A stretch of DNA of 64,000 bases from Octopus bimaculoides (Eukaryota): positions 94,045,992 to 94,109,991 of the forward strand of contig NC_068989.1 in NCBI RefSeq assembly GCF_001194135.2. The letters are read 5' to 3'. This document shows, piece after piece, positions 4,645-60,152 of the stretch. Position numbers and translations under genes: made by a program. Positions within the stretch are counted from its first letter, which is position 1. Each line of letters begins with the position of its first letter. Under the pieces are notes generated by a model that made no database searches, had not been told where the DNA came from, and was given only the letters and a program-made list of their open reading frames with translations.

Positions 4645-4858
4645 GTGGAGAAGGCGGCGAGCTGGAAGAATCGGTCGAAACGCTTAGCAGTATTTCGATT
4701 GGCTTTTAGTTCTGAATTCAAATTTCACCGCGGTCCACTTTGCCTTTCATCCTTTCGAGGCCTATAAAATAAGTTCCCGTTGTGCACTTGGGTCGATGTA
4801 ATCGACTTAAACCATCTCCAGAAATTGTTGGCCTTGTGCCAAAATTTGAAACCAATAC
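4645..4858 (+). mobile_element. tRNA-derived SINE (OR-type), near full length
   Basis: GGCGGCGAGCTGG(A)AGAATCG head, GTTCTGAATTCAAAT B-box-like, conserved body, and TGGCCTTGTGCCAAAATTTGAAACCAATA tail shared with 18984, 23074 and 51584. Confidence 0.85.
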
Positions 4859-6900: not shown

Positions 6901-8775
6901 TGTGAACTTTGCTGTTTATATGAGCAGCCTAGCTCATTNNNNNNNNNNTCATTTTGCTGTCCACAATTACTTCCATGTATATATATATATATATGTATAT
7001 GTATGTGTGTGTGTGTATAAACCAAGAACTCTCCCGTCGTTAGACGACGTATCATGGTTCGGCTTCTTCTTCCCGAACAACCACATGTATACACATTTCA
7101 TTACTTCAACAATTATTTGCACTTTACAATGAATCTACAAATACTTCTGTAAGATTTCACATACATCACAAAAATTTATAATGAACATGCAAACAAAGAA
7201 TGCTTAACAACGAAAATAAATATTTCCTTAAGTTTCCTCCTCTGGATAACGTCCAAAATACAATCATATGTTATAAAGAATGCCAAATAATAGTTGTCAA
7301 AATATCTAGCTATATTTATGTTCACCTTATCGAGTATACATCTACAAAAATGAATATGATTTATTAAAAAATGCTATCATTTTCGTCTATTATATCTAAG
7401 CATGAGACTACAACTACAAATATGTGCAGTAGGTTAAAATTAATCAAAAAATACAATTACTGAAAAGAAAAGTAATATTTGAAAAGTGAAATAGTAATAA
7501 TATTTCTTTAAGAAATAATAGATGCTTGAAGCCAAAGTCATAAATTTCAAGTTTTACAATTATATAAAAAAAAAACTTCAAACAAAAATATATTCCATAT
7601 TGGTGAATTTATCCAAAGAAAATACAATGTACTAAATTATAGAACAAATACACAAAACACACGCGAAAAAATAACCATACATGACAAGACAATAGATCAG
7701 CTGGTATGATGCATCATTCATCTGAAGATCATTGTCATATGTTTCTCAACAACATCATTTATTTTTATGTTTATATTTTTACATTGAAACACATAGATAC
7801 ATGCCTATATAGTTAAAGATAAATCGATATTCTTACGCACATATCTGCACACATACATGTGTAACTAAAGAGACAGACATATATAGAATGGTTTACTTAG
7901 TTCCTTGCTTATACACACATACACACACACACACACATGTNNNNNNNNNNNNNNNNNNNNNNNNNNNNNNNNNNNNNNNNNNNNNNNNNNNNNNNNNNNN
8001 NNNNNNNNNNNNNNNNNNNNNNNNNNNNNNNNNNNNNNNNNNNNNNNNNNNNNNNNNNNNNNNNNNNNNNNNNNNNNNNNNNNNNNNNNNNNNNNNNNNN
8101 NNNNNNNNNNNNNNNNNNNNNNNNNNNNNNNNNNNNNNNNNNNNNNNNNNNNNNNNNNNNNNNNNNNNNNNNNNNNNNNNNNNNNNNNNNNNNNNNNNNN
8201 NNNNNNNNNNNNNNNNNNNNNNNNNNNNNNNNNNNNNNNNNNNNNNNNNNNNNNNNNNNNNNNNNNNNNNNNNNNNNNNNNNNNNNNNNNNNNNNNNNNN
8301 NNNNNNNNNNNNNNNNNNNNNNNNNNNNNNNNNNNNNNNNNNNNNNNNNNNNNNNNNNNNNNNNNNNNNNNNNNNNNNNNNNNNNNNNNNNNNNNNNNNN
8401 NNNNNNNNNNNNNNNNNNNNNNNNNNNNNNNNNNNNNNNNNNNNNNNNNNNNNNNNNNNNNNNNNNNNNNNNNNNNNNNNNNNNNNNNNNNNNNNNNNNN
8501 NNNNNNNNNNNNNNNNNNNNNNNNNNNNNNNNNNNNNNNNNNNNNNNNNNNNNNNNNNNNNNNNNNNNNNNNNNNNNNNNNNNNNNNNNNNNNNNNNNNN
8601 NNNNNNNNNNNNNNNNNNNNNNNNNNNNNNNNNNNNNNNNNNNNNNNNNNNNNNNNNNNNNNNNNNNNNNNNNNNNNNNNNNNNNNNNNNNNNNNNNNNN
8701 NNNNNNNNNNNNNNNNNNNNNNNNNNNNNNNNNNNNNNNNNNNNNNNNNNNNNNNNNNNNNNNNNNNNNNNNNNG

Positions 8776-8870
8776 GAAGTACGAGGGGGGAAAAGGAGAT
8801 ACGTAGTAGTAACAGAGGAAGAACGAGAGGGGTAAAGCGAGATACGTAGTAGTAAAGAGGAAGAACAATG
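8776..8870. repeat. About 42-bp purine-rich minisatellite abutting an 835-N gap
   Basis: GAGATACGTAGTAGTAA(C)AGAGGAAGAAC occurs twice, with a partial third unit at the gap edge. Confidence 0.7.
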
Positions 8871-10191: not shown

Positions 10192-10477
10192 CGTTGTCTG
10201 AACAATAGATATCCGGACTGTTGCCATAGTAACGAAGCTAAAGCACGTAAAGTAAAGCCGCTTGTCACAGGTTGACCGTGAACTCTTTTGTGGATGTGCA
10301 CTTTTGTGGATGTGAAACTTCTAGCCCACCTTCAGTGTTCACAGCAGTGCTTAGAAAGGTGTGTTGTGTGTGATCATCGCATTGAACATGACAGAAAAAA
10401 TCGAGCAGAAAATCTGCATCAAATTTTCCAAAATCTTGTCAATACCTGCTCAGAGGCCTACGCAAAATTTTCAAAAC
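10192..10477 (+). mobile_element. Mariner transposon 5' end with truncated transposase start
   Basis: TA at 10190-10191, then a TIR-like start; ATG at 10388 gives MTEKIEQKICIKF and, after a frameshift, QNLVNTCSEAYAKF (mariner N-terminal EQR.CIKFC..LG...SE motif). Confidence 0.8.
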
Positions 10478-10601
10478 TTCCAGGAATGTTCTGATGTTTT
10501 TCTGTGAAGTTCCGAGGAGTGCCTGCAATGTTCCGTGGACTACCTTTCCAAAAAGTTCCGGGGATTGTCTGGAAAGTTCCGGGGGATTGCCTGGAAAATT
10601 C
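10476..10601. repeat. Left block of (TTC)CTGGAAAGTTCC repeat array (about 5 units of 21-26 bp)
   Basis: CTGGAAAGTTCCGGGGATTGT-like units, same as those at 11298-11370. Confidence 0.85.
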
Positions 10602-11297
10602 ATACATATATACATGCACGACTACACTATCAATATTGTCTAGATTCCAATGTGTTTTGTTTCAAGACAAGAAACCGGAACTCTTTACCTTGATGGGAAA
10701 TTCGAAAATTAAACCAATAACGAACCTACTAATTTGAATATTATACTAAAATCATTGAGACATATATATATATTTCATTAATACACTTTTATGTTTAATT
10801 AACAATCTGGAATAATCTTGAGTTTTCAGGTAAAAAGAGACTGACTTTAGTCTGCAAATTCTGTGAGCATAACAGTAAAAATATGCAATTTTTTTTTAAA
10901 ATTAAGTAAATCATTCTATCCCGATCTTTTCTGAAATTCAATGATGGGGTTTCGTGTCTTAGAAAACGAGTTATTTTTTTCTTCTTTTTCATGTGAGTTC
11001 AGAGTTAAAAGGCTAAAGAACGGCTCATTTACTTAGACACGGATATATGCTTCGTGTAGCAATACATAATATTTGCTTCATACATACTTTTCTACGATGC
11101 ATACACACACACACACACACACAAACATACATACACATTTATTTACATACATATCTACATACATACTTACATATCTAAATGCAAACATACATTGATACTT
11201 ATCTATATACATACATAGACACACATACATACATTTGGAAACCTACTATCACAATAGACACGTATCCTCCTTATCTCTTTCTACCTTACACACACAG

Positions 11298-12052
11298 TTC
11301 CGGGTATTGCCTGGAAAGATCCGGGGATTGTCTGGAAAGTTCAGCGGATTTCCTGGAAAGTTTCGAGGTTTTTCAGGAAATTTCTGAGGATGAGCTACTT
11401 CCTGGAATGTGACTTCCTGGAAAATTTCGAGGACTTTTCGGGAAAGTTGCGAGGATAAGCTACTTCCTGGAAAGTTCCTGGAATGTAATTCCCTGGAAAG
11501 TTCCGATGATTTCCTGGAGAGTTCTGGGGATGTGCCTTCCTGGAAATTTCCCCGACTTCCTGGAAAGTTCCTAGAGCCTCCTGGAAAGTTCCAATGATTT
11601 CCTGGAGAGTTTCAAAGTTGAACTAATGTTTGGAAATTTTCGATGGCACTTTCTAGAAAATTTCGAAGATGAGCTACTTCCTGGATTGTTTCGAAGAGGG
11701 GCGAATTACTTCATGGACAGGTCCGAGGAGAGGGATTACATCCTGCAGTGTTCCGAGGTGTGGTTGCGAATTAACATTCTGGAAAGTTCCGAAGAGGGGA
11801 AATAATTACTTCCTGGAAAGTTCCGAGGAGGGGAGAAATTACTTCCTGGAAAGTTCCAAAGATTTGGAGGAGGGAAGGAATTACTTCCTGTAAAGTTTCA
11901 AGCTAGGGAAGGAAGGGTGGAATTACTTCAAGAAAGTTCCAAGCAGGGTGAAGAAGGGGAGGAGTTATTTCCTGGAAAGTTCCAAGGAAGCGGAGGAATG
12001 GAAGGAATTACTTCCTGGAAAGTTCCGGAGGGGAGGAATTATTTCCTGAAAA
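11298..12052. repeat. Main (TTC)CTGGAAAGTTCC array, about 27 units with variable spacers; HSE/STAT-like motif cluster
   Basis: About 11 exact TTCCTGGAA palindromes by eye; perfect TTCnnGAAnnTTC at 11372-11384, 11777-11789 and 11927-11939. Confidence 0.9.
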
Positions 12053-12442
12053 GTCATGCTGCTGCGGAATTTGGATGCTCCAGTAATGTGTAAGGGCACG
12101 TGCATCATAAAATTTAGACTCCCGAGTTTTACAAGCAACCATCTTGAATGGACCGGCCGCTGGTCAAGATGTTCTTGTAACTCCAATGTCACTCCTCCCT
12201 CCCTCCGATACGATCTACAAGTTTAAGCGGCTTCAATTTCCTGTCAAACTCTCCTTTGCAATGACAATAAGTACGGCACAGGGTCAATCATTGCAAATGT
12301 TTGGTTTAAATCTCACAGAGCAAGTGTTCTCCCACGGTCAACATTACGTTGGATGCTCCCGTGTTGACAGGCCACAAGTCTATACATTTGTGCATCAGAA
12401 GGGAAAATGAGAAACGTTGCCTACAAAGAAGCGATCCACTGA
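12053..12442 (+). mobile_element. Helitron RepHel PIF1-helicase C-terminal relic (frameshifted)
   Basis: VMLLRNLDAP.MC.GT / VLQATILNGPAAGQDV / FKRLQFPVKLSFAMTISTAQGQSL...VFSHGQHYVGCSRV / GKMRNVAYKEA* are the characteristic Helitron helicase motifs. Confidence 0.92.
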
Positions 12443-12950
12443 ACAGACGGCATTTCTTCACATCTTCCAAATCACCCCAGTCATCTGCCGCCTCAAAAGC
12501 TTCGTGCTTGCCGTGCCAGCCAACGTAAGTCAATGACTCACAACTTCACTCATTCACTCTATCTCTCTTTATCACCCTATTTCTCTCTCACATAGGCACA
12601 CACGCATTCACGTCCATTTCATATATCTTTCAATTTCTGCTCTCTGCAAATAAAAGTTTTAGATACAACTGCTTACAAAACTTGGGATTAATGTATAATT
12701 TCTTTCTATGTTCATAATTAAATAAATGTTTCAATGATTATACAGACGTCCAATAGAATAGCTCTCAGAAACAGACTACGTACAAATTCTTTCTTCACAA
12801 CACCTGAATCCATGTTCTGACAGGAGGTTGATGAAATCTCCAAACAGCTAGAGGCTCCAATCAAAACAGGGGACCCGATATGACAAGGTTGAGAAAAACT
12901 GTTATAGATTATGTCTAACCGAAAACGATCACAGCCACATCATCCAAACA

Positions 12951-12979
12951 GGCCGGGTGAAACCGGGTTTAGCTGCTAG
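12951..12979 (+). mobile_element. Helitron 3' terminus (subterminal hairpin plus CTAG)
   Basis: GGCCGGGTGAAACCGGGT imperfect GC-rich hairpin, then about 8 nt, then CTAG at 12976-12979, followed by an AT microsatellite. Confidence 0.7.
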
Positions 12980-13001
12980 AATATATATATATATATATGT
13001 T

Positions 13002-13040
<39 letters not shown>

Positions 13041-16000
13041 TATTACACTCACACATCGTTTATATCTGCCAGTAAATAAAAATATGCCTCTCCCTCAGAA
13101 TTGCACCAAGTAACAATATGCTTGCATGACACGTACTAACACATAGTAACGCGCCGCTCACGCACACAGATACATACACATACAAACATACATATATACA
13201 CATATATATTGAAGTTTAAATACATATATATATATATTGAAGTTTAACATAATATGGACTTCTGCAGTGAGTAAAGAGATTACTCTCTAAGAACGATGGT
13301 TAAAATACTGGAATGTTGGTAATCTGCAAAGAATTATTAATTCTGTTCCTGCCAAAATTTCAGACCAGCTAATAAAATATTCGTTGATAATGCAAATTTA
13401 AATAATGGCGTTCAAAAATATTCTCGAGGGAATCTTCTGTACAAATAACTAATGCTGAATTGCAGGCAATTTTCCTAGATTGCTGAGCCGAAAATAATTT
13501 TTAATTAAGTGAAATTATACTCGTAACACGAATGACAAAAAATAATTAGCGTTATCCAAATTCCACTGAATTCTATGTGGAGATCTTTGCATTAGAGTAT
13601 CAGTCTCTTATTCGCAGCCCTTGTAATACATGTATTTCCGGACACTCCACCATTTTGATTCATTTCAAGCTTGACGTTGTTAAGCCAATGTCAGTGAAAA
13701 GTCATATAGCAACATAAAACGAACAGGACTGAATACACGGAGAATATTCAAAGATTGACCCAAAAAAGATTTCGAGAATTCCAAAACATTTTTTCCTGAA
13801 GAACACACCGATGAATACAAGGCAATTTAATGTTANNNNNNNNNNNNNNNNNNNNNNNTATATATATATAATCCAAATATTAAGCAGACAAAGAAATTAT
13901 TTAACACATCTTTAATGATTCGTTATAATCGTTTCTGAACCAACTCTGCTTGCAACGCCAGTTTACTCAAAACTTCGAAGTGAATATTTACGTAACGTTT
14001 CGATTTTGGTTATGAGAATGACACTTCAGAGGTGCATTATTTCATTGTGCGTCTTCCATAAACCAAAAGGAAAAAAAGATCAACGTCTGGTAAAGGCGCT
14101 ATGTAAAAGCGCAGAGTCAAGTCTGATAAAATGCCACTCTAAAGTCTAAAACCGCAAACATTGCGTAAATTTTTATCTCGAAGTTTTGCGTAAACTTGCA
14201 TTGTAAGCAGAGATGTAAAGAAACAATTGCATCGAATCATTAATGATATCTTAAATAATTTCATTCTCTGATTTTTGTGATCATAATTTTACACTTCGCC
14301 AAACCCACATAACGGTTTGACCGTCGTGTAACTAGGATTTTTTACTCTTGAAGAATTTCGGAGTTGCTCTGGTACCTGATAGTGATGATAAGCCCAGTAT
14401 TCGGGTGGAATGCTTCTCAAGAAATATCCTACCTTTATACTATACAAGTATCTCTGTCCGTCTGTCTGTCTATCGGTTTGTCTGTTTTTCTGTCTCACAC
14501 ACCCTATCGATCGATCTGTCTGTTTCTTTGACCGTCTGTCTATCTCTTTTTCTGCCTTTCTGCACTTTCGTTTGAAATCTTACCTACCGCTTCATTGTTT
14601 TTCAGCCTTTTGTGGTCATTAAAATTTACTACCCGTGCAGAATGGTTCAGAAGCTAAAAAGTGATATCACACGGTATTTGTTCCGGACAATTTCTTTGGT
14701 CTTTAACTCCAACTATCGTTCAATCCAACGATAGCACTTGCGTGGTTTGGCGAAGTTCCCATTGTTGGAAGATTTTTGGTCATTGCCGATATCTTCCTCC
14801 TCTTCTTCCTGAAGTCTCTGTGACCATCGATATATAAGGTGACGAACACTTTTCGCTGCCAAAGTTTACAAAATTGACGCATTTTACGAAAATCTCAGCA
14901 AATATTTTGATGTAAGGTGAGAAGGCTGTATTAATCCTGAAATCGTGTTTATGAGTTTTTAATCAAATGCTATATATATACTTTCTCTGAAACGACATAG
15001 AATATTACATTTTCTGCCTAGAATATTCTGATTATAAGGGGTAACATTTTGAAATGCCTTTCGAAGTCTAAGTTCGTAGTTATACACCTTCTTCACTTGA
15101 CTGCAGAACAATCCTTCATCATATTAATATAAACGTATACCGTTAGTTTTTGTCAATTCTCATCAGGCAATCAATGTTTAATTCGTTATCAATAAAATTA
15201 ATCTAATATTTATTGAAATATTTAAGATAGTTGGCGAATGAAGATCGGACACCAATGTTGTCCTTTTTTTATATACATATCCAAGAACCCCATCTTTTCC
15301 TTCGGATATAAATTATTATATTCGATTATTTGATTGCAAGAAAAGCTGTATGATATAAAACACTAAATCTTTATAAATTTAGTTTTAAAAGAAATGGTAC
15401 GAAATTATTCCTTTTCCTAAAATTAAGTATTTTTTAATGAATGAATAATTTTACATTGTATTTATTACTATTTACGTCCCTTTCAACGTATGTGCGTGCG
15501 TATATACGTAGTACCTACCTGCCTCCCGATATACAACTTTGGCATATAGGTATACATATATACAAATGTGTGTGTGAATGTATGTATGTATACACAGACA
15601 CACAAACACACACACACACATTATATATATATGTATATATATATATATATCATGTGTGTTCGAATAGATGTAGGATTGCAGCTGTTAAGTTTAGAGTTCT
15701 ACGCTAATGATCTTCATCTGTTCTGCTCCCACATCTGCACTTGGGACATCAATTGCAGATTTCCAAACATCTACGTAGCAATAAATGATAAAATCTTGTA
15801 TTTATCGTAATTTCTTATATACGTGTGTGTAGGGCGTGTACAACGCTTCGGCGAAATCGAGACTTTGCTCGATTTTTCGTCTTATTTCTGGAATGAAGGA
15901 TGTGATTTGGCAGACACTCAGTGGAAGGATCGAACCCAGAAATTACACGGTTACAACCACAAATAGTATTCATGGTGATTTAAATTTTTGGCAAATATAC

Positions 16001-16949
16001 GTGCCACTATAGCTTATATGTACAATATGTGATATAATAATGTTTATTCTCCGTAAACGCTTGTAAGCATTGGTATATTACGACACGGATATATGTATTC
16101 AAGTTGGCACCTATTGGTTTGGACAAAAAGAAATTTAACGTTATTCCCGTAAGAATATTTGAGTTTAATTTAATTGTAAGTACATGATATGTTAGTTTCT
16201 GAATGTCACTTTATCAAAACAGACATCAATTCTAGAAGTTTATATACAAAGAATCATCAATTTATGTCAATGCGAAAATACAACACCACTTCACTTCAAA
16301 GACTATTATTATACCTGATAAAGTGGCGGTATAATTGTTTTGGAATTAGGGAAATAAGCAAATGAATATATTCTAATATTTGCACAGATATTGTTATCAT
16401 GGTTCTATTGCTTGCAACAACAAATAGTAATAACAATTGATGTCATAAGTAGTTGTAGACTCACCACAAACTAATGCCTCATATATATGCGGATGTAAAA
16501 GTAATAAAGACGAGGAAATATGTTTACTAAGTTCCTTACCGTGTGTATATATATATATATATNNNNNNNNNNNNNNNNNNNNNNNNNNNNNNNNNNNNNN
16601 NNNNNNNNNNNNNNNNNNNNNNNNNNNNNNNNNNNNNNNNNNNNNNNNNNNNNNNNNNNNNNNNNNGATACAGCAATATATATATATGTGTGTGTGTGCG
16701 AGTGCATGTATGTATTTGTGTGTTCTTTTCTTCCCAACGGTTCCAAGAAGTATTTAAGGGTTATTTATGAGTATATTTCTCTTTTCGAAACAGGTAGTGG
16801 GTTGTTTCTACTAGACGCCCCGTACACAAGAAGAGAAACGTCTTTATTGCTATATATGAGGAACTAGCGTTTTAGACAAAGTTTGGATTAAATTGGAAGT
16901 CTCTGGCGGGAATATTTAACGGTATCAGGAAGAGAAAATAACGGTGTAT

Positions 16950-18983: not shown

Positions 18984-19182
18984 AAGGTGACGGCTGGCAT
19001 AATCGTTAGCAAGCGGCATTTCGTTCGTTTTTACGTTCTGTGTTCAAATACTACCGAGATCGACTTTATATTTCATCCATTCGGGGTCGATAATATAAAT
19101 AGAAGTTGAGCACTGGGGTTGACATAAACCATTCAGTTGCTTTCCCGAAATCGCAGACCTTGTGCCAAAATCAGAAACCAAT
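18984..19182 (+). mobile_element. OR-type SINE
   Basis: AAGGTGACGGCTGGCATAATCGTTAGC head ... TTGTGCCAAAATCAGAAACCAAT tail. Confidence 0.8.
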
Positions 19183-20994
19183 GTTTATACATTCAGATTT
19201 TTCCAAAGATAGCAGACTGAGAAGTGGACTACTGGAGTTTCCACCTAGATTTTGCATTTTTGAATTGCATCTATCTCGGAGTGTTTCTTATTTAAAAAAA
19301 AAAGAGAAGCTTTTAATTCCATATAATGGAGTTTGGAACGTTGATATATTTTATAAATGCATCGCAGATATAAAGTAATTGAATTAGTTCANNNNNNNNN
19401 NNNNNNNNNNNNNNNNNNNNNNNNNNNNNNNNNNNNNNNNNNNNNNNNNNNNNNNNNNNNNNNNNNNNNNNNNNNNNNNNNNNNNNNNNNNNNNNNNNNN
19501 NNNNNNNNNNNNNNNNNNNNNNNNNNNNNNNNNNNNNNNNNNNNNNNNNNNNNNNNNNNNNNNNNNNNNNNNNNNNNNNNNNNNNNNNNNNNNNNNNNNN
19601 NNNNNNNNNNNNNNNNNNNNNNNNNNNNNNNNNNNNNNNNNNNNNNNNNNNNNNNNNNNNNNNNNNNNNNNNNNNNNNNNNNNNNNNNNNNNNNNNNNNN
19701 NNNNNNNNNNNNNNNNNNNNNNNNNNNNNNNNNNNNNNNNNTATATATATATATATATATGTGTATGTATGTATGTATGTATGTGTGTGTGTGTATGTAT
19801 TTATAGCTTTCTCTTGTATTTCTGTGTAATTGTTTACATGCTAGTAACATTCTGTGTACAAATATGATCTGGTACTGTACATTTGTATGTAATGTTTCTC
19901 TTTCATAATGCTCCAGAGAATTTATTTCTACCAGTTTTACCATAATTAGTTATAAAGAAATATAGGAGACATGTCTCTTGTGATTAAACACAAATTTACT
20001 TTTCCAATGATGGAAAGCAGTTGCTATAGTTATATATATTTTGCCAGTATTCAAATTTATTACCATCTAAAATATATTAGAATTTTTCGTGGTAACTTAA
20101 ATTGTAACAACGTTCACAATATACGAAAAAAATGGCCTTCGTTTTTCAATATCGACAAATATTGCACTTCAGTTGGGAAGGGTTCGGTATAATGTAATTT
20201 CATGACAATTTCGTGTTCTGTTTAGGAGAAAACGATATGACTTTTAGAATATAGTTTCAATTTACCATTTCCAGGGGAACAATTCAATGTACAATTTCAG
20301 TAATTTGCAAATGGAATTTAAAGAAAATAACTAAGGAGTGCTTAAACACGGAAAACAACTTCTATCGTTCCATTTAACATGGTAGCTTATGGGTAATTTA
20401 AAATGGTGTCCTATTGCTAACTGAAAGAGATGTTATTTAACCCTAGGCCAACCGTGAGTTAACAAAGTCCTGAACGGAGGTATTTCAACCACGAACAACT
20501 CGGGTATTTTAGGGTCACTTAAGAATAATTAGTGCATAATTACTTATTTAGACTTTAAGTGATTAATTAAGGGCGATTTATGTTATGTTTCTAACATGCT
20601 AACTGAAAATAAGAGTGATTCTGTTCCATAAAGTATTAACATTCTTTGTGTTTTAATTTTGCCTTCTTATTCCTGGGTAAAATTTCAAAATTCTGTTGAA
20701 TAAATTCATATGGCAGAATAATTAATTACTTTGGAACTCATGTTCTGGGGAAAAGATTAAGGCTCAATATGCAGTCAAAGAATATTCTCAGTCACACCAA
20801 ATAGTAATGCTGAAGAATGTTACGATAAAGAGTAGCAGGTTATGGAAGGCCAAACGAAGCAATCATTTGCAAGCAAACTCCAAGGTATGGTTACTCAGAA
20901 CGAAATTTTTGAAACATAATCGCATTATTTACTGCCTGATATACAATGTATATGCATCAAGCTACTAGTATACGTATATACAAACACACACACG

Positions 20995-22048: not shown

Positions 22049-22239
22049 AAGGGCAAAAGAAAAAAAGATTTTTATGCCAATATGCAGAGAATAGACTTTA
22101 TATCGTCAATCACCACATTACATTCTACATTCACTATGAAAACATAGAGAATGTATATTGTAATATGGTGACTGACGATTTAAAGTCTATTCTCAGCATA
22201 TTGGCATAGAAATCTTTTTTTCTTTTGCCCTTGTTTATA
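22042..22239. mobile_element. About 195-bp foldback MITE (near-perfect palindrome)
   Basis: TATAAACAAGGGCAAAAGAAAAAAAGATTT...CATTC arm is the reverse complement of GAATG...CTTTTGCCCTTGTTTATA; inner CTATG-AAAA-CATAG; a half copy lies at 29968. Confidence 0.85.
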
Positions 22240-22559
22240 ATTCTTTATAATTTTCACCTTTAAAGGTTTTTTTAATATGCTGGCCAATTTGATGGAATTA
22301 TTTTGAAAGAATTTTATCCAATATTTGAAGTATACATTCACACACACATATATATATATATATATATACGTATATATATATATATATATATACACGCATA
22401 TATGTATATATACACACATATATATGCATATACACATATATATATATATACACACATATATATGCATATACACATATATATATATATATATATATGCACA
22501 TACATATATATGCATATACACATATATATATATATATGCACATACATATATACACACAT

Positions 22560-22602
<43 letters not shown>

Positions 22603-22658
22603 TACATATATACACACATNNNNNNNNNNATATATATATATATATACATATATATACA

Positions 22659-22694
<36 letters not shown>

Positions 22695-23073
22695 CATATA
22701 TATATATTATTCGCTACGTTTACATCAGAGACATTGAGCGTATGAAAATTATTAGGCAAAGGAACCGTGTTGGTTGAGGTGTTTGCTGCACAAATTTTAT
22801 CAATTTTCCCATCAAAATATCACAAAGAAATGTGAAAAATGCTATTTACAAAATGTAGGTGTCTGTTCTTTGGCTTCATTCTTATCTGTATTCGCGCTGA
22901 TATTTTTATTTACGCATGTGTGCGCACGTGTGTGTGTCTGATGCTGAATTTTATGTAAGTGCATATAAATATATAAACTATAATAAATTGCAATATCTAA
23001 TACTGAATAAATGATATCTAGATATAAAAATCAAAAATTTTTAAATTCCGAACACATATTTAAATTTATTTAA

Positions 23074-25863: not shown

Positions 25864-26158
25864 CGTTTTTCGTTTGCTTGATTCAGTCACTAGACTAAGG
25901 CCATGTTGGGGAATCACCTTGAAGAATTTTTAGTCGAAAGATCGATCTCAGGACTTATATTTTGGTTAAACCTGGTTCTTATTTTATCAGCACTTTCATT
26001 AAAATCGCTAAGTCACTGGAAAACCGACTGTCAAGCGGTGGTGGGAACAAACACAGATGAAAAGATACACGCACACTCACACACATAAATACGATGGGCT
26101 TCTTTCAGTTTCTGTCTACCAAATTCACTGACAAGGCTTTGGTCAGCCCGAGACTTAT
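25864..26158 (-). mobile_element. OK-type SINE (5'-truncated or interrupted)
   Basis: Reverse complement of the body and tail of 34987-35381 (GATGGGCTTCTTTCAGTTTCTGTCTACCAAAT; GATTCAGTCAC...GGCCATG). Confidence 0.8.
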
Positions 26159-33410: not shown

Positions 33411-33519
33411 GTGTCGTAAAGAGACAACAAACCTGATAGAAAATATATGAAAGGGGTGCTCCAGCATGGCCAAATTCTACTAAAGGAATAAAATAATTAC
33501 GAATGTATATACATATATA

Positions 33520-34086
33520 CGAGAGTGAGTCAAAAAGTAATGCCATTTTGTTTAGGACAGGTATAATTACCAACACAGGAACATGTATCATACATCAAAA
33601 GGAAGCTGGTCCTCTGTGGATCACATCCCTACTTCTCAACATAGTCACCGTTTCTCTCAATAGCAATGTTCCACCTTCGAATGAGAGCATGTATCCCTGC
33701 CCAATAAAATTCTGTTGACAGTTCTTTGAGCTACCTCTTCACTACATTTTCACTTTTTCGTCACTGGAATAATTTAGCACCTTCAAACTTTTATCTGATC
33801 GGCCCCATGAAAGAGGGTTTGAGAAGCAAACATTATTCCAGTGACGAGGAAGTGAAAACTGTAGTGAAGAAGTGGCTCAAAGAACAGTCAACATAATTTT
33901 ACGGGGCAGGGATTCATGCTCTCATTCGAAGGTGGAACATTGCTATTGAGAGAAACGGTGACTATGTTGAGAAGTAGGGATGTGATCCACAGAGGACCGG
34001 CTTCATTTTGATGTATGATACATGTTCCTGTGTTGGTAATTATACCTGTCCTAAACAAAATCGCAATATTTTTTGACTCACCCTCG
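33520..34086. mobile_element. Mariner-derived foldback element with about 254-bp inverted arms and TA TSD
   Basis: TA|CGAGAGTGAGTCAAAAAG...TTTTTGACTCACCCTCG|TA; arms 33520-33773 and 33832-34086; the right part encodes LAPSNFYLIGPMKEGLRSKHYSSDEEVK...RRWNIAIERNGDYVEK*. Confidence 0.92.
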
Positions 34087-34986
34087 TACATTATATATAT
34101 ATATATATATAATAAAGTTGTAAGGTACCGCACGAGTGGAAATATATATGAAAGAAGGTTTGAAAATGCAACTTTAAAGATGTTGCTTATCCACTTGACC
34201 GGTTTCACTTATTTTAGGAAAAGATTGTCAAACTTGAAATGTAAAGCTTTGTATGAGCTTTGTTGTGTTAAGTACTGGTTATCACAAAAGTATTAAAATA
34301 CATACATACATTATTTGATGATAATAAGGAAATGTTAAAAACAGTTTACAAAAAAGTATTTAATTTTGTTCTTAAATGGAAATTTAGTAAAACACAATAA
34401 AAATATTAAATCCTTAGATAATCTCTGAAGGAAATGAATTCAGAACGTATTGAATCGTAAATAATATCACGCCACATTTTGTTTGAGATTTTAATGAATC
34501 TGCCAATCTACCTCCGCAATATTATTGAATGTGAATGTATTATTTCTATTAGAGATCCCCCCCCCCAACACACAGAAACACATACATACACACACACATT
34601 CATACACATAACGCGCGCGCGCACACACACACACCTTGAACTGAAAATAGCATATAATGATTTGTAATGAGTCGCGTGTAACTTGACTGATTCTAAGATG
34701 GTGTCCAATATCTCTCACACGTAAAAGGCGATTAAAATTTCGAACCAGCAGAGAACTTATATTTCAAAACTTTTTTTGATCGGTTTATATCAAAATCAGT
34801 CCAAAATTACAATATAATGATCTGAGATGATTGGCTATTAAGAGTATCTTTTTAGAAGACAGATATAATTTGTTTGTAACAAGACATGGTAACAATATAT
34901 ATTTTGTTTAATAATCAAATAAAGATCCTTCATCTTTTGTTGATCCACTAACGTTTCATCATATGGTATGCATAAATTATCATCTC

Positions 34987-37037: not shown

Positions 37038-37070
<33 letters not shown>

Positions 37071-37232
37071 CACGATGGGCTCCTTTCTGTTTCTGTCTAC
37101 CAAATCCACTCACATGACATTGATCGGCCCGAGTATATAGAAGACATTTGCCCATGATGTCACACAGTTGGACTGAACCCGGTACCTTGTGGTTGGGAAG
37201 CAAGCGTCTTACCATACAGCCACGCCTGCGCT
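37071..37232 (-). mobile_element. OK-type SINE 5' half
   Basis: Reverse complement begins GCGCAGGCGTGGCTGTATGGTAAGACGCTTGC; B box GGTTCAGTCC. Confidence 0.85.
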
Positions 37233-37524: not shown

Positions 37525-37853
37525 TGTGGACCCTAATACAGTAAATAATTACAAATCCATCTTTGCAGGGAGAGTAGGAGTTTACGTACGAACAGCTATT
37601 TGTATAGTGATTCAGTGAAGAATAACTAACAATGCATCGTACAACCCACAAACACACATACATACATACACACATATATATGTATACATTTGTGTATGTG
37701 ATACCGAGAGAGAGGAGAGAGAGATAGAGAGCAATATATGCTTCTGTCTCTCTGTAGGTACATGTCTATCCATCTATCTATGTATACATATATAATATGT
37801 GTGTGTGTGTGTGTAATAAATAAATATATATATATGTATGTATGTATGCATGC

Positions 37854-37888
<35 letters not shown>

Positions 37889-37897
37889 CATGAATGC

Positions 37898-37931
<34 letters not shown>

Positions 37932-38113
37932 GTATGCNNNNNNNNNNNNNNNNNNNNNNNNNNNNNNNNNNNNNNNNNNNNNNNNNNNNNNNNNNNNNNN
38001 NNNNNNNNNNNNNNNNNNNNNNNNNNNNNNNNNNNNNNNNNNNNNNNNNNNNNNNNNNNNNNNNNNNNNNNNNNNNNNNNNNNNNNNNNNNNNNNNNNNN
38101 NNNNNNNNNNNTA

Positions 38114-38147
<34 letters not shown>

Positions 38148-38195
38148 CATGAATGAATGCATATATATATATATGTATGCATGCATGTATATATG

Positions 38196-38239
<44 letters not shown>

Positions 38240-40709
38240 CCCTTATATGCGTGTATGTATGTATGTACGAGTGTGTTCGTTTACCTAGCATTAGCTTATC
38301 CCCTGTTAACGACGTATTCAGCTTCCTTTTCAATGAGCTTGAGGATAAACATTCCAATTTGTAAATTATATATTAGATCGGCACCAGTTTCCTGATTTAT
38401 CCTGGCAGCTCCTTAAACAACAACCGTATTATTTACATCATACATCCGCTAATATTGCATTCCTCAGTTTCGTCAATAACATTCTACTTAGAATAATTCA
38501 ATAATTCGATGGAACCCTTTTAAGTTAATGAGGTAAGTTTAATTTTTCTGACACTTAACTCCGCCTAAAGTGCTTCGTTATTGGGTAAACGTGAAAGGAA
38601 TAAATAATATTATGTATCAGTGTTTCTGTTGTTATTTACATTGTAATTACTGTTATTGGTTTTAATTTTTTTACTTTTTGTGAAGTGACTTTTACGTTCC
38701 TAACTACGTTGTTGCTTTCCAGGCAATTCTCTGTAGAGAAATTGTTGTTAATGCGATCGCTCTAATCACTGATACATGGAGTGTCAACTCTGTTTGGTGT
38801 ATTTGCAGCCGTTATCACAAACATACTGTTAGTGTTTCTCCTTTGTTGATAGAGCTATTAGGTTGAAGCTTACACATTAAATGACAAATTACTGTCAAAC
38901 AAAAACTAAATGGCTGTAAGCCTTATCGATTATTTATTTACTAGTCAAGAGAAGTTGAAATTGCATATGATCGAGTGACAAATAAAATATAAGCAATAGA
39001 AAACTAAATGAAGAGAGAACAACTACAAACGAGACACCGTGTTTTATTGCTAGTTGAGTTAGGTCACACAGCATTTGGAATGCTTCGATATCTACAATCA
39101 ATATAGAAATAACATACACAAACAGACACACACACACTCTCATACACGTAGGCAAAGGCAAGCAGGTGCATACACACGCAGATTGTGTCTACGTTAGTAT
39201 TCGTTTTGCCTTATAGCACAGTTAAGCGAACATGCACGGAAGATAGCAAGTTTATATAATGACAACGTTGGCTTCTTATATTTGCGTTTATCTATTCATA
39301 AATAAAAGCTCATGTTCATGCGAACATTTTGTAGCGTGTGTTCTTCTTAATGCTGTTGTTGTTGCTGCTAATGCCGATGTTGTTTATTGCAATGCTATTC
39401 CTTTTCAAGAAAACTGATGATCAAAGACGTCAAGCCGTAGGCACCACCGTTCAAACCACAAAACTTATATTTCTTGCTTCATGCTCTATCAACTATTATA
39501 TTTGTATGATGCCTTGCTTATATATATATAGTTAGATAGGAGAGGTGGTAAATATCTTTGGATTGTAAGTGCATATGTATGAGAATGTTTAGTTGTTTGT
39601 ATTTTTCCTTGTTTTTGAAGGATTGTTTATCTAAAATGTATATTTGCAGACCTAGAAAATGCAATGACTTCGTGTACACCATTAAGATGATGAGAGCAAT
39701 TACGTGTGAGCGAATTATTAAATACTCGTTTGATTATATACACCGACACTGACATTTACAGGAAGTGTGTATATTTACACATATGCAGTAATAGGAGTAA
39801 TAAACTAAAGGAATGTTTAATTACGTGAATGTATTATAGACAATCGTTGGAAGACAAGGCCGATTATTACATGAAGTTTCTTCAGTGCATGTAATAAAAT
39901 TTAGAAAGGTTCATGTCGTTTCTGAGACAAATTACTTGACTATAAAATTCAAAACAAGTGTTCGCCCGAAGACGATACAAATTTTGTTCTGGGTACCTAG
40001 ACACTAGTGAAAGTAAACGAGAGCTTTCTGTGTTCTTCACAAGAGGAATTAACATTCAGGGATAGAAAGGAAATAACCCACCTGCGAAACTTCCAGACAA
40101 TGAATCTTGCAAAAGAATTCTGCACAGGAGGCATGCTTCGCTTTACGAGATTAAATTCGGGAAGAGGTGGACTATAAGTTGCGAAATTAATTCGCAATTA
40201 ATCAATTAATCAATGCCTGCATATTTATGTGGCAAGTAATGTGATATGTTGAATCAAAGCAGATGTCTTGCAATGCAAACATAATCTGCCTGATACGGGG
40301 AAGTTGTAACATATTTTCAATTTTGCTCATTATGTCATCAAGATTTAGTCTTAGCCCTCTAAGCTGCTATCATTAATTAAATATTTAGAAGTACAAACCA
40401 TAGAACAACGAATAAATGCGTCAACCAAATGCAAGGATACAAAAGTAGTGCATAATGAATTGTACGTCGAAAAAACGAGGCAAAGGAAAGGATTAGACTG
40501 GCAATTTTGGGCCAGCCTTTCATGAAGATAAAATTACAGAGAAATAATACTAATGATATAAAACAGAGGCAAGAAAAACAACGATATCTGTGTAACTTAC
40601 AACTACAAACTTACAACTACAAACTGCAGAATGGATATATGAGTGTATTTGTGTGTGTCTGCATCTATACATACACGCACGCACGCACGCACACGCACAC
40701 ACACACACG

Positions 40710-51583: not shown

Positions 51584-51797
51584 GCAAGCTGGCAGAATCG
51601 TTAGCACACCGGACAAACATTTTGGCGGCATTTCGTCCGTCTTTATGTTCTCTATTCTCAAATTCCACCGAGGTTGACTTTGCCTTTCATCCTTTCACGA
51701 TCGTTAAATTAAGTTCCAGTTGTGCACTGGGGTCCTTATAATCGACTTGCTCCATCCACCTCTTCTTGCTGACATTGTGCCAACATTTGAATTCAAT
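51584..51797 (+). mobile_element. OR-type SINE
   Basis: GCAAGCTGGCAGAATCGTTAGCACACCGGAC head; GACTTTGCCTTTCATCCTTTC core; TGTGCCAACATTTGAA tail. Confidence 0.85.
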
Positions 51798-59915: not shown

Positions 59916-59982
<67 letters not shown>

Positions 59983-59992
59983 TTGTATGCAT

Positions 59993-60152
59993 ACAACGCG
60001 TTTCCTTCTGTTTCCGTCTACCAAATCCGTTCAGAAGGCTTTGGTCGGCCAAGACTATAATAGAAGAAACTTGCCTAAGGTGTCAATGAATGGGAGCTGA
60101 ACCCGCAACAGTGTGGTTGGGAAGCAAACTTCTTACCACACAGCAACGCTTG
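59993..60152 (-). mobile_element. OK-type SINE 5' half
   Basis: Reverse complement of the 34987 head (CTTACCACACAGC; GTTTCCGTCTACCAAATCC). Confidence 0.85.

Follow-up and report, generated by a model that had tools for sequence, protein, structure and literature searches.

A minisatellite of heat-shock-element-like units adjoining a 5′-truncated Helitron remnant in Octopus bimaculoides

Does the dense array of heat shock element (HSE)-like sites found beside a Helitron in the Octopus bimaculoides genome belong to that Helitron, or is it a separate repeat? The array and the Helitron lie at 10476-12979 of a 64-kb stretch, hereafter the window, and this part was read directly and then scanned. 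A sequence-only reading had described the locus as a Helitron carrying an array of heat shock factor (HSF) and STAT-like sites, i.e., a possible mobile stress-response module. We lean, with modest confidence, toward another explanation, in which a non-coding minisatellite was joined to a dead 925-bp Helitron tail by one illegitimate-recombination or deletion breakpoint. The first part is the dead 3′ remnant of an autonomous-type Helitron, i.e., the last ~129 helicase codons, a 540-bp tail and the CTAG end. The second part is a non-coding minisatellite with a 15-nt core of alternating TTCC/GGAA blocks. The closest relative used for comparison was L003, the 20.6-kb O. sinensis contig VCDQ01012807.1, which encodes the protein P0112. 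The locus is laid out as follows.

10478..10601, plus strand: array block A, made of six degenerate units of 21-25 nt that differ from the core at 2-4 positions; decay of the array is greatest at this edge
10602..11293, no strand: interruption of ~690 bp, AT-rich, unique in the window and unrelated to the array or the Helitron
11294..12053, plus strand: array block B, ~27 units, each the 15-nt core TTCCTGGAAAGTTCC plus a variable spacer
12054..12442, plus strand: PIF1-like helicase C-terminal pseudogene, ~129 aa from MLLRNLD to a natural stop, with two frameshifts
12443..12979, plus strand: non-coding tail at the Helitron 3′ side (83% identity to L003 10965-11538), with a weak 4-bp hairpin (12953-12966), 11-13 nt and CTAG
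12981..13037, no strand: (TA)n microsatellite flanking the Helitron 3′ terminus

The Helitron homology starts exactly at the junction of array and helicase, 12054, where the window reads ...TTTCCTGAAAAGTC / ATGCTGCTGCGG... To the left of this point, L003 continues with helicase coding sequence, not array, i.e., ...LHLKVVAPIMLLRNLD (...HELHLKVVAPI, then MLLRNLD). At the same place the window has a truncated last repeat unit (...GGAATTATTTCCTGAAAAGTC / ATGCTGCTG...), which ends after 12-13 nt of the core. Only TC is common across the breakpoint, which makes a 2-nt microhomology. Because the junction interrupts a repeat unit as well as the reading frame of the helicase, it carries the signature of illegitimate recombination or deletion. 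The array decays toward its outer, left end, where each core has 3-4 mismatches and the repeat fades gradually with no sharp limit, and it is near-perfect at the Helitron junction. An array that is most degenerate at the outer edge, best at the junction and cut in its final unit shows the pattern of a longer array cut by a breakpoint. A single illegitimate-recombination or deletion event at the TC microhomology may thus have fused the array and the Helitron tail.

The array is absent from L003. In its 20.6 kb, including 10 kb upstream, there were no GGAAnnTTCC sites, no perfect HSEs and no minisatellite. The window sequence upstream of the array had nothing in common with L003, and no A|TC Helitron 5′ boundary was visible at the left edge of the array (~10476). 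A Helitron-borne HSE cluster is one in which the HSEs lie inside the Helitron and recur across family copies, and here the array lies outside the L003-homologous stretch.

Other Helitron loci were also compared. Octopus loci were fetched via their proteins (L001, L002, L003, L006 and L007), and one locus, L008, came from an ENA assembly. Among the loci fetched, only L003 was of the same DNA family as the window remnant. No array or HSE cluster was present in the octopus loci L001, L002, L006 and L007 or in L008, which is intact with a 1469-aa RepHel, and in L006-L008 ordinary helicase codons stand directly upstream of MLLRNLD. In the UniRef cluster of P0100, the longer members likewise run into helicase sequence, not array. 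A search with the Rep domain of L003 for an intact family member returned one same-family match, at 71% identity, on a 1.4-kb contig. A second copy of the array or its flanks was found neither in the window nor in the other octopus and Helitron loci compared, ~100 kb in all. Since the homology begins at 12054, L003 and five other loci have no array, and no 5′ end was seen, the proposal that a Helitron carries the array found no support. As far as sequence can tell, the evidence speaks against the array being part of the Helitron, though not decisively.

Several side observations were made in these searches. At 503-1174 and 1619-2057, L008 has tandem repeats of 113/269 nt upstream of its open reading frame (ORF) and a 69-nt in-frame N-terminal coding repeat with a weak STPR Pfam match. 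These repeats are unrelated to HSEs, although they mean that Helitron 5′ regions can hold tandem repeats. In O. bimaculoides, P0100 and P0121-P0134 comprise at least 18 near-identical models of 74-111 aa, which derive from the C-terminus of a different subfamily of Helitron helicases. Some of these models lack residues between MCN and ILITPMSL through an internal deletion. The models point to short helicase-tail remnants that form a multi-copy family.

A metagenome scan for two cores 5-30 nt apart found two contigs only, L004 (Ga0206126_10066496) and L005 (Ga0256406_1015395), neither from a cephalopod. They are unrelated small viral- or phage-like contigs with intergenic (GTTCCTGGAAA)n tandem repeats of 11-12 nt, at 340-375, 1050-1100 and 1730-1795 of L004 and at 4282-4400 of L005. 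L004 shows three cassettes of ~650 nt, in each of which short tandem repeats precede the (GTTCCTGGAAA)n repeat, itself ahead of a small ORF, and L005 resembles a small phage genome. The repeats are possibly iteron-like and protein-binding. Their likeness to the octopus core appears coincidental.

The helicase fragment is read in frame 2 (12056-12110), frame 3 (12111-12385) and again frame 2 (12368-12442, with the natural stop). In a search of 5.8 billion proteins it matched at E = 8e-29, which bears out the PIF1 C-terminal fragment of the sequence-only reading, and the matches carry the Pfam PF21530 Pif1 2B domain. The nearest named matches were from Octopus bimaculoides and O. sinensis. Proteins of the same family are P0112 (O. 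sinensis, 79% identity) and P0005 (O. bimaculoides, 68-75% identity). P0005 is the nearest protein from O. bimaculoides, and it has no contig on record. No near-identical protein (>80%) was found in this collection, which includes O. bimaculoides and O. sinensis. At the DNA level, L003 aligns with window 12054-12979 at 83-89% identity, and the helicase pseudogene is 84-89% identical to L003 10413-10962.

Upstream of the shared part, L003 has degraded Rep and helicase frames, with the Rep motif EWQKRGL.HAHIL and a called PF05970 (PIF1) gene. The Rep segment used as a query returned proteins with PF14214 (Helitron_like_N). The Rep motif and the PF05970 gene place the family among canonical RepHel Helitrons. 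In L003, at 10622-10794 inside the helicase C-terminus, an inverted duplicate (79% identity) was also found of a 150-nt segment of its own 3′ tail, the segment that is equivalent to window 12544-12694. The L003 copy is thus rearranged too.

At the right end, the homology stops at CTAG in the window (12979) and at CTAA in L003. Both satisfy the CTRR rule, and both then run into unrelated TA-rich DNA. The base after CTAG is A in the window, not T, and it is T in L003. AT-rich targets are usual for Helitrons, but (TA)n tracts are very frequent throughout the window, including beside the Helitron 3′ end. A hairpin and CTAG terminus had been noted here, and the CTAG stands at the homology end and in agreement with CTRR. 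The hairpin is only a 4-bp stem (CCGG/CCGG, -4.3 kcal/mol, z = -0.15); shuffled sequences fold as stably, and in L003 the stem is mismatched. The Helitron 3′ terminus as placed from sequence is supported by the homology end and CTRR, not by the hairpin. No Helitron 5′ end (TC at a host A|T insertion) was found, as the homology stops at 12054 inside the helicase ORF. The window copy is accordingly 5′-truncated, or its 5′ end was not recognized. On its alignment to L003, 12054-12979 is a genuine Helitron 3′ remnant of ~925 bp, truncated at the 5′ side. This Helitron part is long dead, i.e., frameshifted and ~16% diverged from its relative.

The array is built on the plus strand from the core TTCCTGGAAAGTTCC, which occurs in six exact copies. 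Inside 10478-12056 there are 10, 17 and 26 copies at up to 1, 2 and 3 mismatches, and ~32-34 units can be set out when up to 4 mismatches are allowed. In the 64 kb, only two 3-mismatch matches lie outside the array, against a chance expectation of ~1.5. Units of block B are 21, 28, 33/34 and 42/43 nt in size, and some spacers read GGAATGGAAGGAATTAC. Tandem Repeats Finder (TRF) gave periods of 21/22 on the 5′ side of the array and of 33/34 and 42/43 adjoining the helicase, with a higher-order unit of 65 nt between them. The array is discontinuous, with ~690 bp between block A (10478-10601) and block B (11294-12053). This interruption and the left flank are each unique within the window, and a (CA)n/(CATA)n-type microsatellite lies at 11079-11234 within the interruption. 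It was considered whether an insertion that duplicated a 5-nt target had divided a single array into blocks A and B, but the alignments are ambiguous because the repeat permits several registers. The interruption may be an insertion or a duplication, and neither is favoured.

The array is non-coding. Stops are found in all six frames, and the longest ORF, of 95 aa, belongs to no Pfam family. A six-frame translation, concatenated from the open frames (315 aa, including most of the 95-aa ORF), had no homologue as a protein query: of 1644 word-sharing candidates, none was at E <= 10. A coding repeat was considered, as the periods 21, 33 and 42 are all multiples of 3, and it was rejected because of the stops everywhere, the frame-breaking unit lengths of 20-43 nt and the absence of Pfam or protein homologues. 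The unit sizes of 21/28/33/42 nt, the 65-nt higher-order unit and the decay at the outer edge suggest that the array may have grown by replication slippage or unequal exchange.

The core has an unusual fit to transcription factor sites. Read as TCCtgGAAagTTC (TCC-tg-GAA-ag-TTC), it is a three-pentamer HSE at 8/9, i.e., with the one mismatch that the sequence-only reading gave, and it contains a perfect GGAAnnTTCC dyad. Perfect three-pentamer HSEs of the form TTCnnGAAnnTTC are located at 11372, 11777 and 11927, exactly as claimed. All three fall in block B, and they are the only ones of that form in the window. STAT-type TTCN3GAA palindromes numbered 13 in the array region (36 in the whole window), a little above the ~11 reported, and the Rel-type resemblance was confirmed with 11 GGAAA[G/T]TTCC sites. 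The count of ~30 core copies is right for degenerate copies (26 at up to 3 mismatches) and wrong for exact ones, of which there are six. HSE sites of at least 8/9 numbered 23 in the 1.58 kb of the array and 30 in the other 62.4 kb, i.e., they are ~30-fold denser in the array.

These counts need careful reading. All ~30 sites are copies of one amplified unit and make one observation, not 30, so the enrichment over shuffles measures amplification, not selection. Conservation of the core against the spacer was considered as a sign of selection and rejected, as it is circular when units are defined by matching the core. The HSF, STAT and Rel consensuses have GGAA/TTCC as their common building block, which is why all three fit, and since they fit equally, no single factor can be assigned from the core. 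The array agrees with the STAT (gamma-activated site, GAS) and Rel/NF-kB consensuses as a TTCN3GAA palindrome or a GGRRNNYYCC decamer, although such predicted consensus fit is no evidence of binding. The resemblances to HSE, STAT and Rel sites would then be a by-product of one amplified palindromic core, and they do not appear to indicate a function of the array.

Some points weigh against the explanation by a minisatellite and a breakpoint. L003 is possibly itself 5′-truncated near 7010, so that the intact 5′ region of the family lies outside the comparison. The array adjoins the Helitron remnant without a spacer and in the Helitron sense orientation. The same arrangement would result if an element with an array near its promoter, such as Helitron1_CE of C. 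elegans, had lost sequence by deletion. Non-autonomous Helentrons of bivalves carry and propagate central satellite-like arrays (PMC7492417; PMC8268682). Finally, in random 21-mers of the window base composition TTCN3GAA occurred in 0.7%, GGRRNNYYCC in 0.1% and HSEs of at least 8/9 in 0.7%, and none of 200,000 combined all three patterns (STAT, Rel and 8/9-HSE). Hence the sequence of the core, TTCC-T-GGAA-AG-TTCC, is not arbitrary but forms a structured double palindrome.

The alternative that survives best, possible and yet less probable to us, is a non-autonomous Helitron with the tandem array as cargo. It would consist of a 5′ end, the array and the last 925 bp of its parent, and would be mobilised in trans like the Cg_HINE elements. 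The array would spread through the genome, and no regulatory role would be needed. It agrees with this that the array is fused directly, and in one orientation, to the 3′ end of a true Helitron, and that the total of ~2.5-3 kb is a typical size. Recently active Helitron families are present in octopus genomes (PMC13282606), and the Helitron family is multi-copy, with related C-terminal fragments annotated many times in O. bimaculoides. However, the element has no identifiable 5′ terminus, its left edge fades gradually, no A|TC boundary lies at ~10476 and nothing upstream is common to L003, and no second array or flank was found in the window or the ~100 kb compared. The absence of helicase-fragment proteins of >80% identity from the protein collection searched also speaks against a young, high-copy family.

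If the octopus composite is mobile, its natural class is the Cg_HINE type. Cg_HINE of Crassostrea gigas are non-autonomous Helentrons whose central part holds satellite-like repeats (Vojvoda Zeljko et al. 2020, PMC7492417). The likeness of the octopus locus to these and other bivalve repeat-bearing elements is a mollusc genome with a rolling-circle-transposon end beside a short, dispersed-type tandem array. In Cg_HINE, the flanking modules are defined on the left and on the right, copies are numerous and insertion sites have been documented, whereas in the octopus a Helitron nature can be demonstrated for the right (3′) module only, which is a coding piece and tail of an autonomous element. 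Cg_HINE are moreover Helentrons, not canonical Helitrons, and their monomers are longer and of satellite type.

The regulatory proposal, i.e., a Helitron-borne platform of HSF (and/or STAT/Rel) sites that makes neighbouring genes stress-inducible, convergent with Caenorhabditis, is improbable. It requires both array mobility and factor binding. In its favour are the consensus core with its perfect dyad, the 23 near-HSE sites with 3 perfect ones in 1.58 kb and the 13 TTCN3GAA palindromes. The precedent that it invoked is genuine: tandem canonical HSEs in several Helitron families of C. elegans and C. briggsae bind HSF-1 (Garrigues et al. 2019, PMC6927752). These families are Helitron1_CE, HelitronY1/Y1A/Y4_CE, Helitron2_CE and Helitron7_CB, and the HSE arrays stand upstream of the RepHel gene, with 14 HSEs in the C. 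elegans element and 85 in that of C. briggsae (PMC6927752). The octopus locus is similar in having a dense tandem HSE-like array 5′ of RepHel-derived sequence in the same orientation.

The differences are larger. An HSE cluster is defined in that study by more than 10 matches to NGAANNTTCNNGAAN or its complement per 1-kb bin, and such bins were found only in those Caenorhabditis Helitrons (PMC6927752). By the same expression the octopus array scores 3 perfect HSEs, at most 3 per kb. Its consensus is at 8/9 with only three units perfect, and its sites are putative. The array adjoins a truncated helicase C-terminus, with no second copy and no element 5′ end known, and the fuller octopus relative L003 has no array. 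Membership of the array in the Helitron is unsupported, and the related octopus Helitron loci are without HSE clusters. The motif equally fits STAT, Rel and other GGAA-binding factors, so that the factor assignment is arbitrary; the origin of all sites from one unit makes their enrichment uninformative on selection. No candidate target gene was recognized in the 64-kb window, and the Helitron part is long decayed. The claim of a convergent HSF/STAT platform thus found no support, and it falls short of the density of perfect HSEs set by its own precedent.

About as improbable is an octopus family of non-autonomous Helitrons that originated when a deletion removed the sequence from a promoter-proximal array up to the C-terminal part of the helicase, and that would spread imperfect HSE/GAS-like arrays bound by HSF1/STAT. 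The least probable is an assembly chimera, in which an array-bearing contig end was mis-joined to a Helitron copy and repeats were collapsed or mis-joined; both partners are repeats in a gapped draft (N runs at 6939, 7941-8774, 9854, 13836, 16563 and 19392), but no N run lies between 9864 and 13835 and the junction is in continuous sequence with the 2-nt microhomology.

The minisatellite explanation is also consistent with two ordinary types of sequence. Like ordinary minisatellites, the array has variable unit length, higher-order periodicity, a degenerate edge and no coding capacity. It differs from them in its core, an unusually structured double palindrome that coincides with several factor consensuses. 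The Helitron part resembles other 5′-truncated Helitron remnants, in which only the 3′ end with CTRR is kept.

Human satellite III, (GGAAT)n, recruits HSF1 in heat shock, at nuclear stress bodies. It is likewise a GGAA-rich tandem repeat, which some octopus spacers (GGAATGGAAGGAATTAC) recall. However, satellite III is a megabase-scale pericentromeric satellite of a vertebrate with no transposon link, and the octopus array has no sequence homology to it.

In the surroundings, the window is a gapped draft in which microsatellites of (TA)n and (CA)n and SINE (short interspersed element)-like repeats are extremely abundant. Assembly gaps are located at 7941-8774, 16563-16666 and 19392-19741, together with several 10-N runs. 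Most long six-frame ORFs, e.g., 7888-8868, 22180-22777 and 37626-38364, are no genes, as they coincide with microsatellites or N runs. No Pfam domain was detected in the 10 largest non-microsatellite ORFs of the window, and an Rfam scan of the window gave no match.

The left flank of the array (10268-10480) was considered as a possible 5′ end of a Tc1/mariner-type element, as it contains a terminal inverted repeat (TIR)-like CAGGTTGACCGTGAACTC, a direct duplicate CTTTTGTGGATGTG (10284-10315) and an ATG at 10388 that opens MTEKIEQKICIKF, followed, past a frameshift, by ..NTCSEAYAKF. As a mariner-like element, it gave nothing in Pfam at E <= 10 and had no inverted partner in the window.

An inverted repeat was found at 33515-33750 and 33856-34091, with 236-nt arms that are 94% complementary and 105 nt apart, of foldback or miniature inverted-repeat transposable element (MITE)-like form. 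Two families of dispersed short repeats were also recognized. The first is at 4686-4856, 19012-19182 and 51658-51756, and the second at 26067-26152, 37048-37133 and 59969-60054 and also in L003 at ~15275-15650. Both (66-81% identity) are probably SINE-like.

If the array were mobile Helitron cargo that binds HSF/STAT, it would add a second, independent instance in which rolling-circle transposons disperse stress-response enhancers. Such an instance would be the first from a lophotrochozoan, with a genome of the kind in which the expansion of transposons is suspected to drive regulatory novelty. On present evidence, the locus consists of two known things, i.e., a decayed 5′-truncated Helitron and a minisatellite beside a rolling-circle element, and the association of minisatellites with rolling-circle elements has already been described in bivalves. 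The main use of the locus is as a cautionary case, in which one amplified palindromic GGAA/TTCC unit mimics arrays of three transcription-factor sites.

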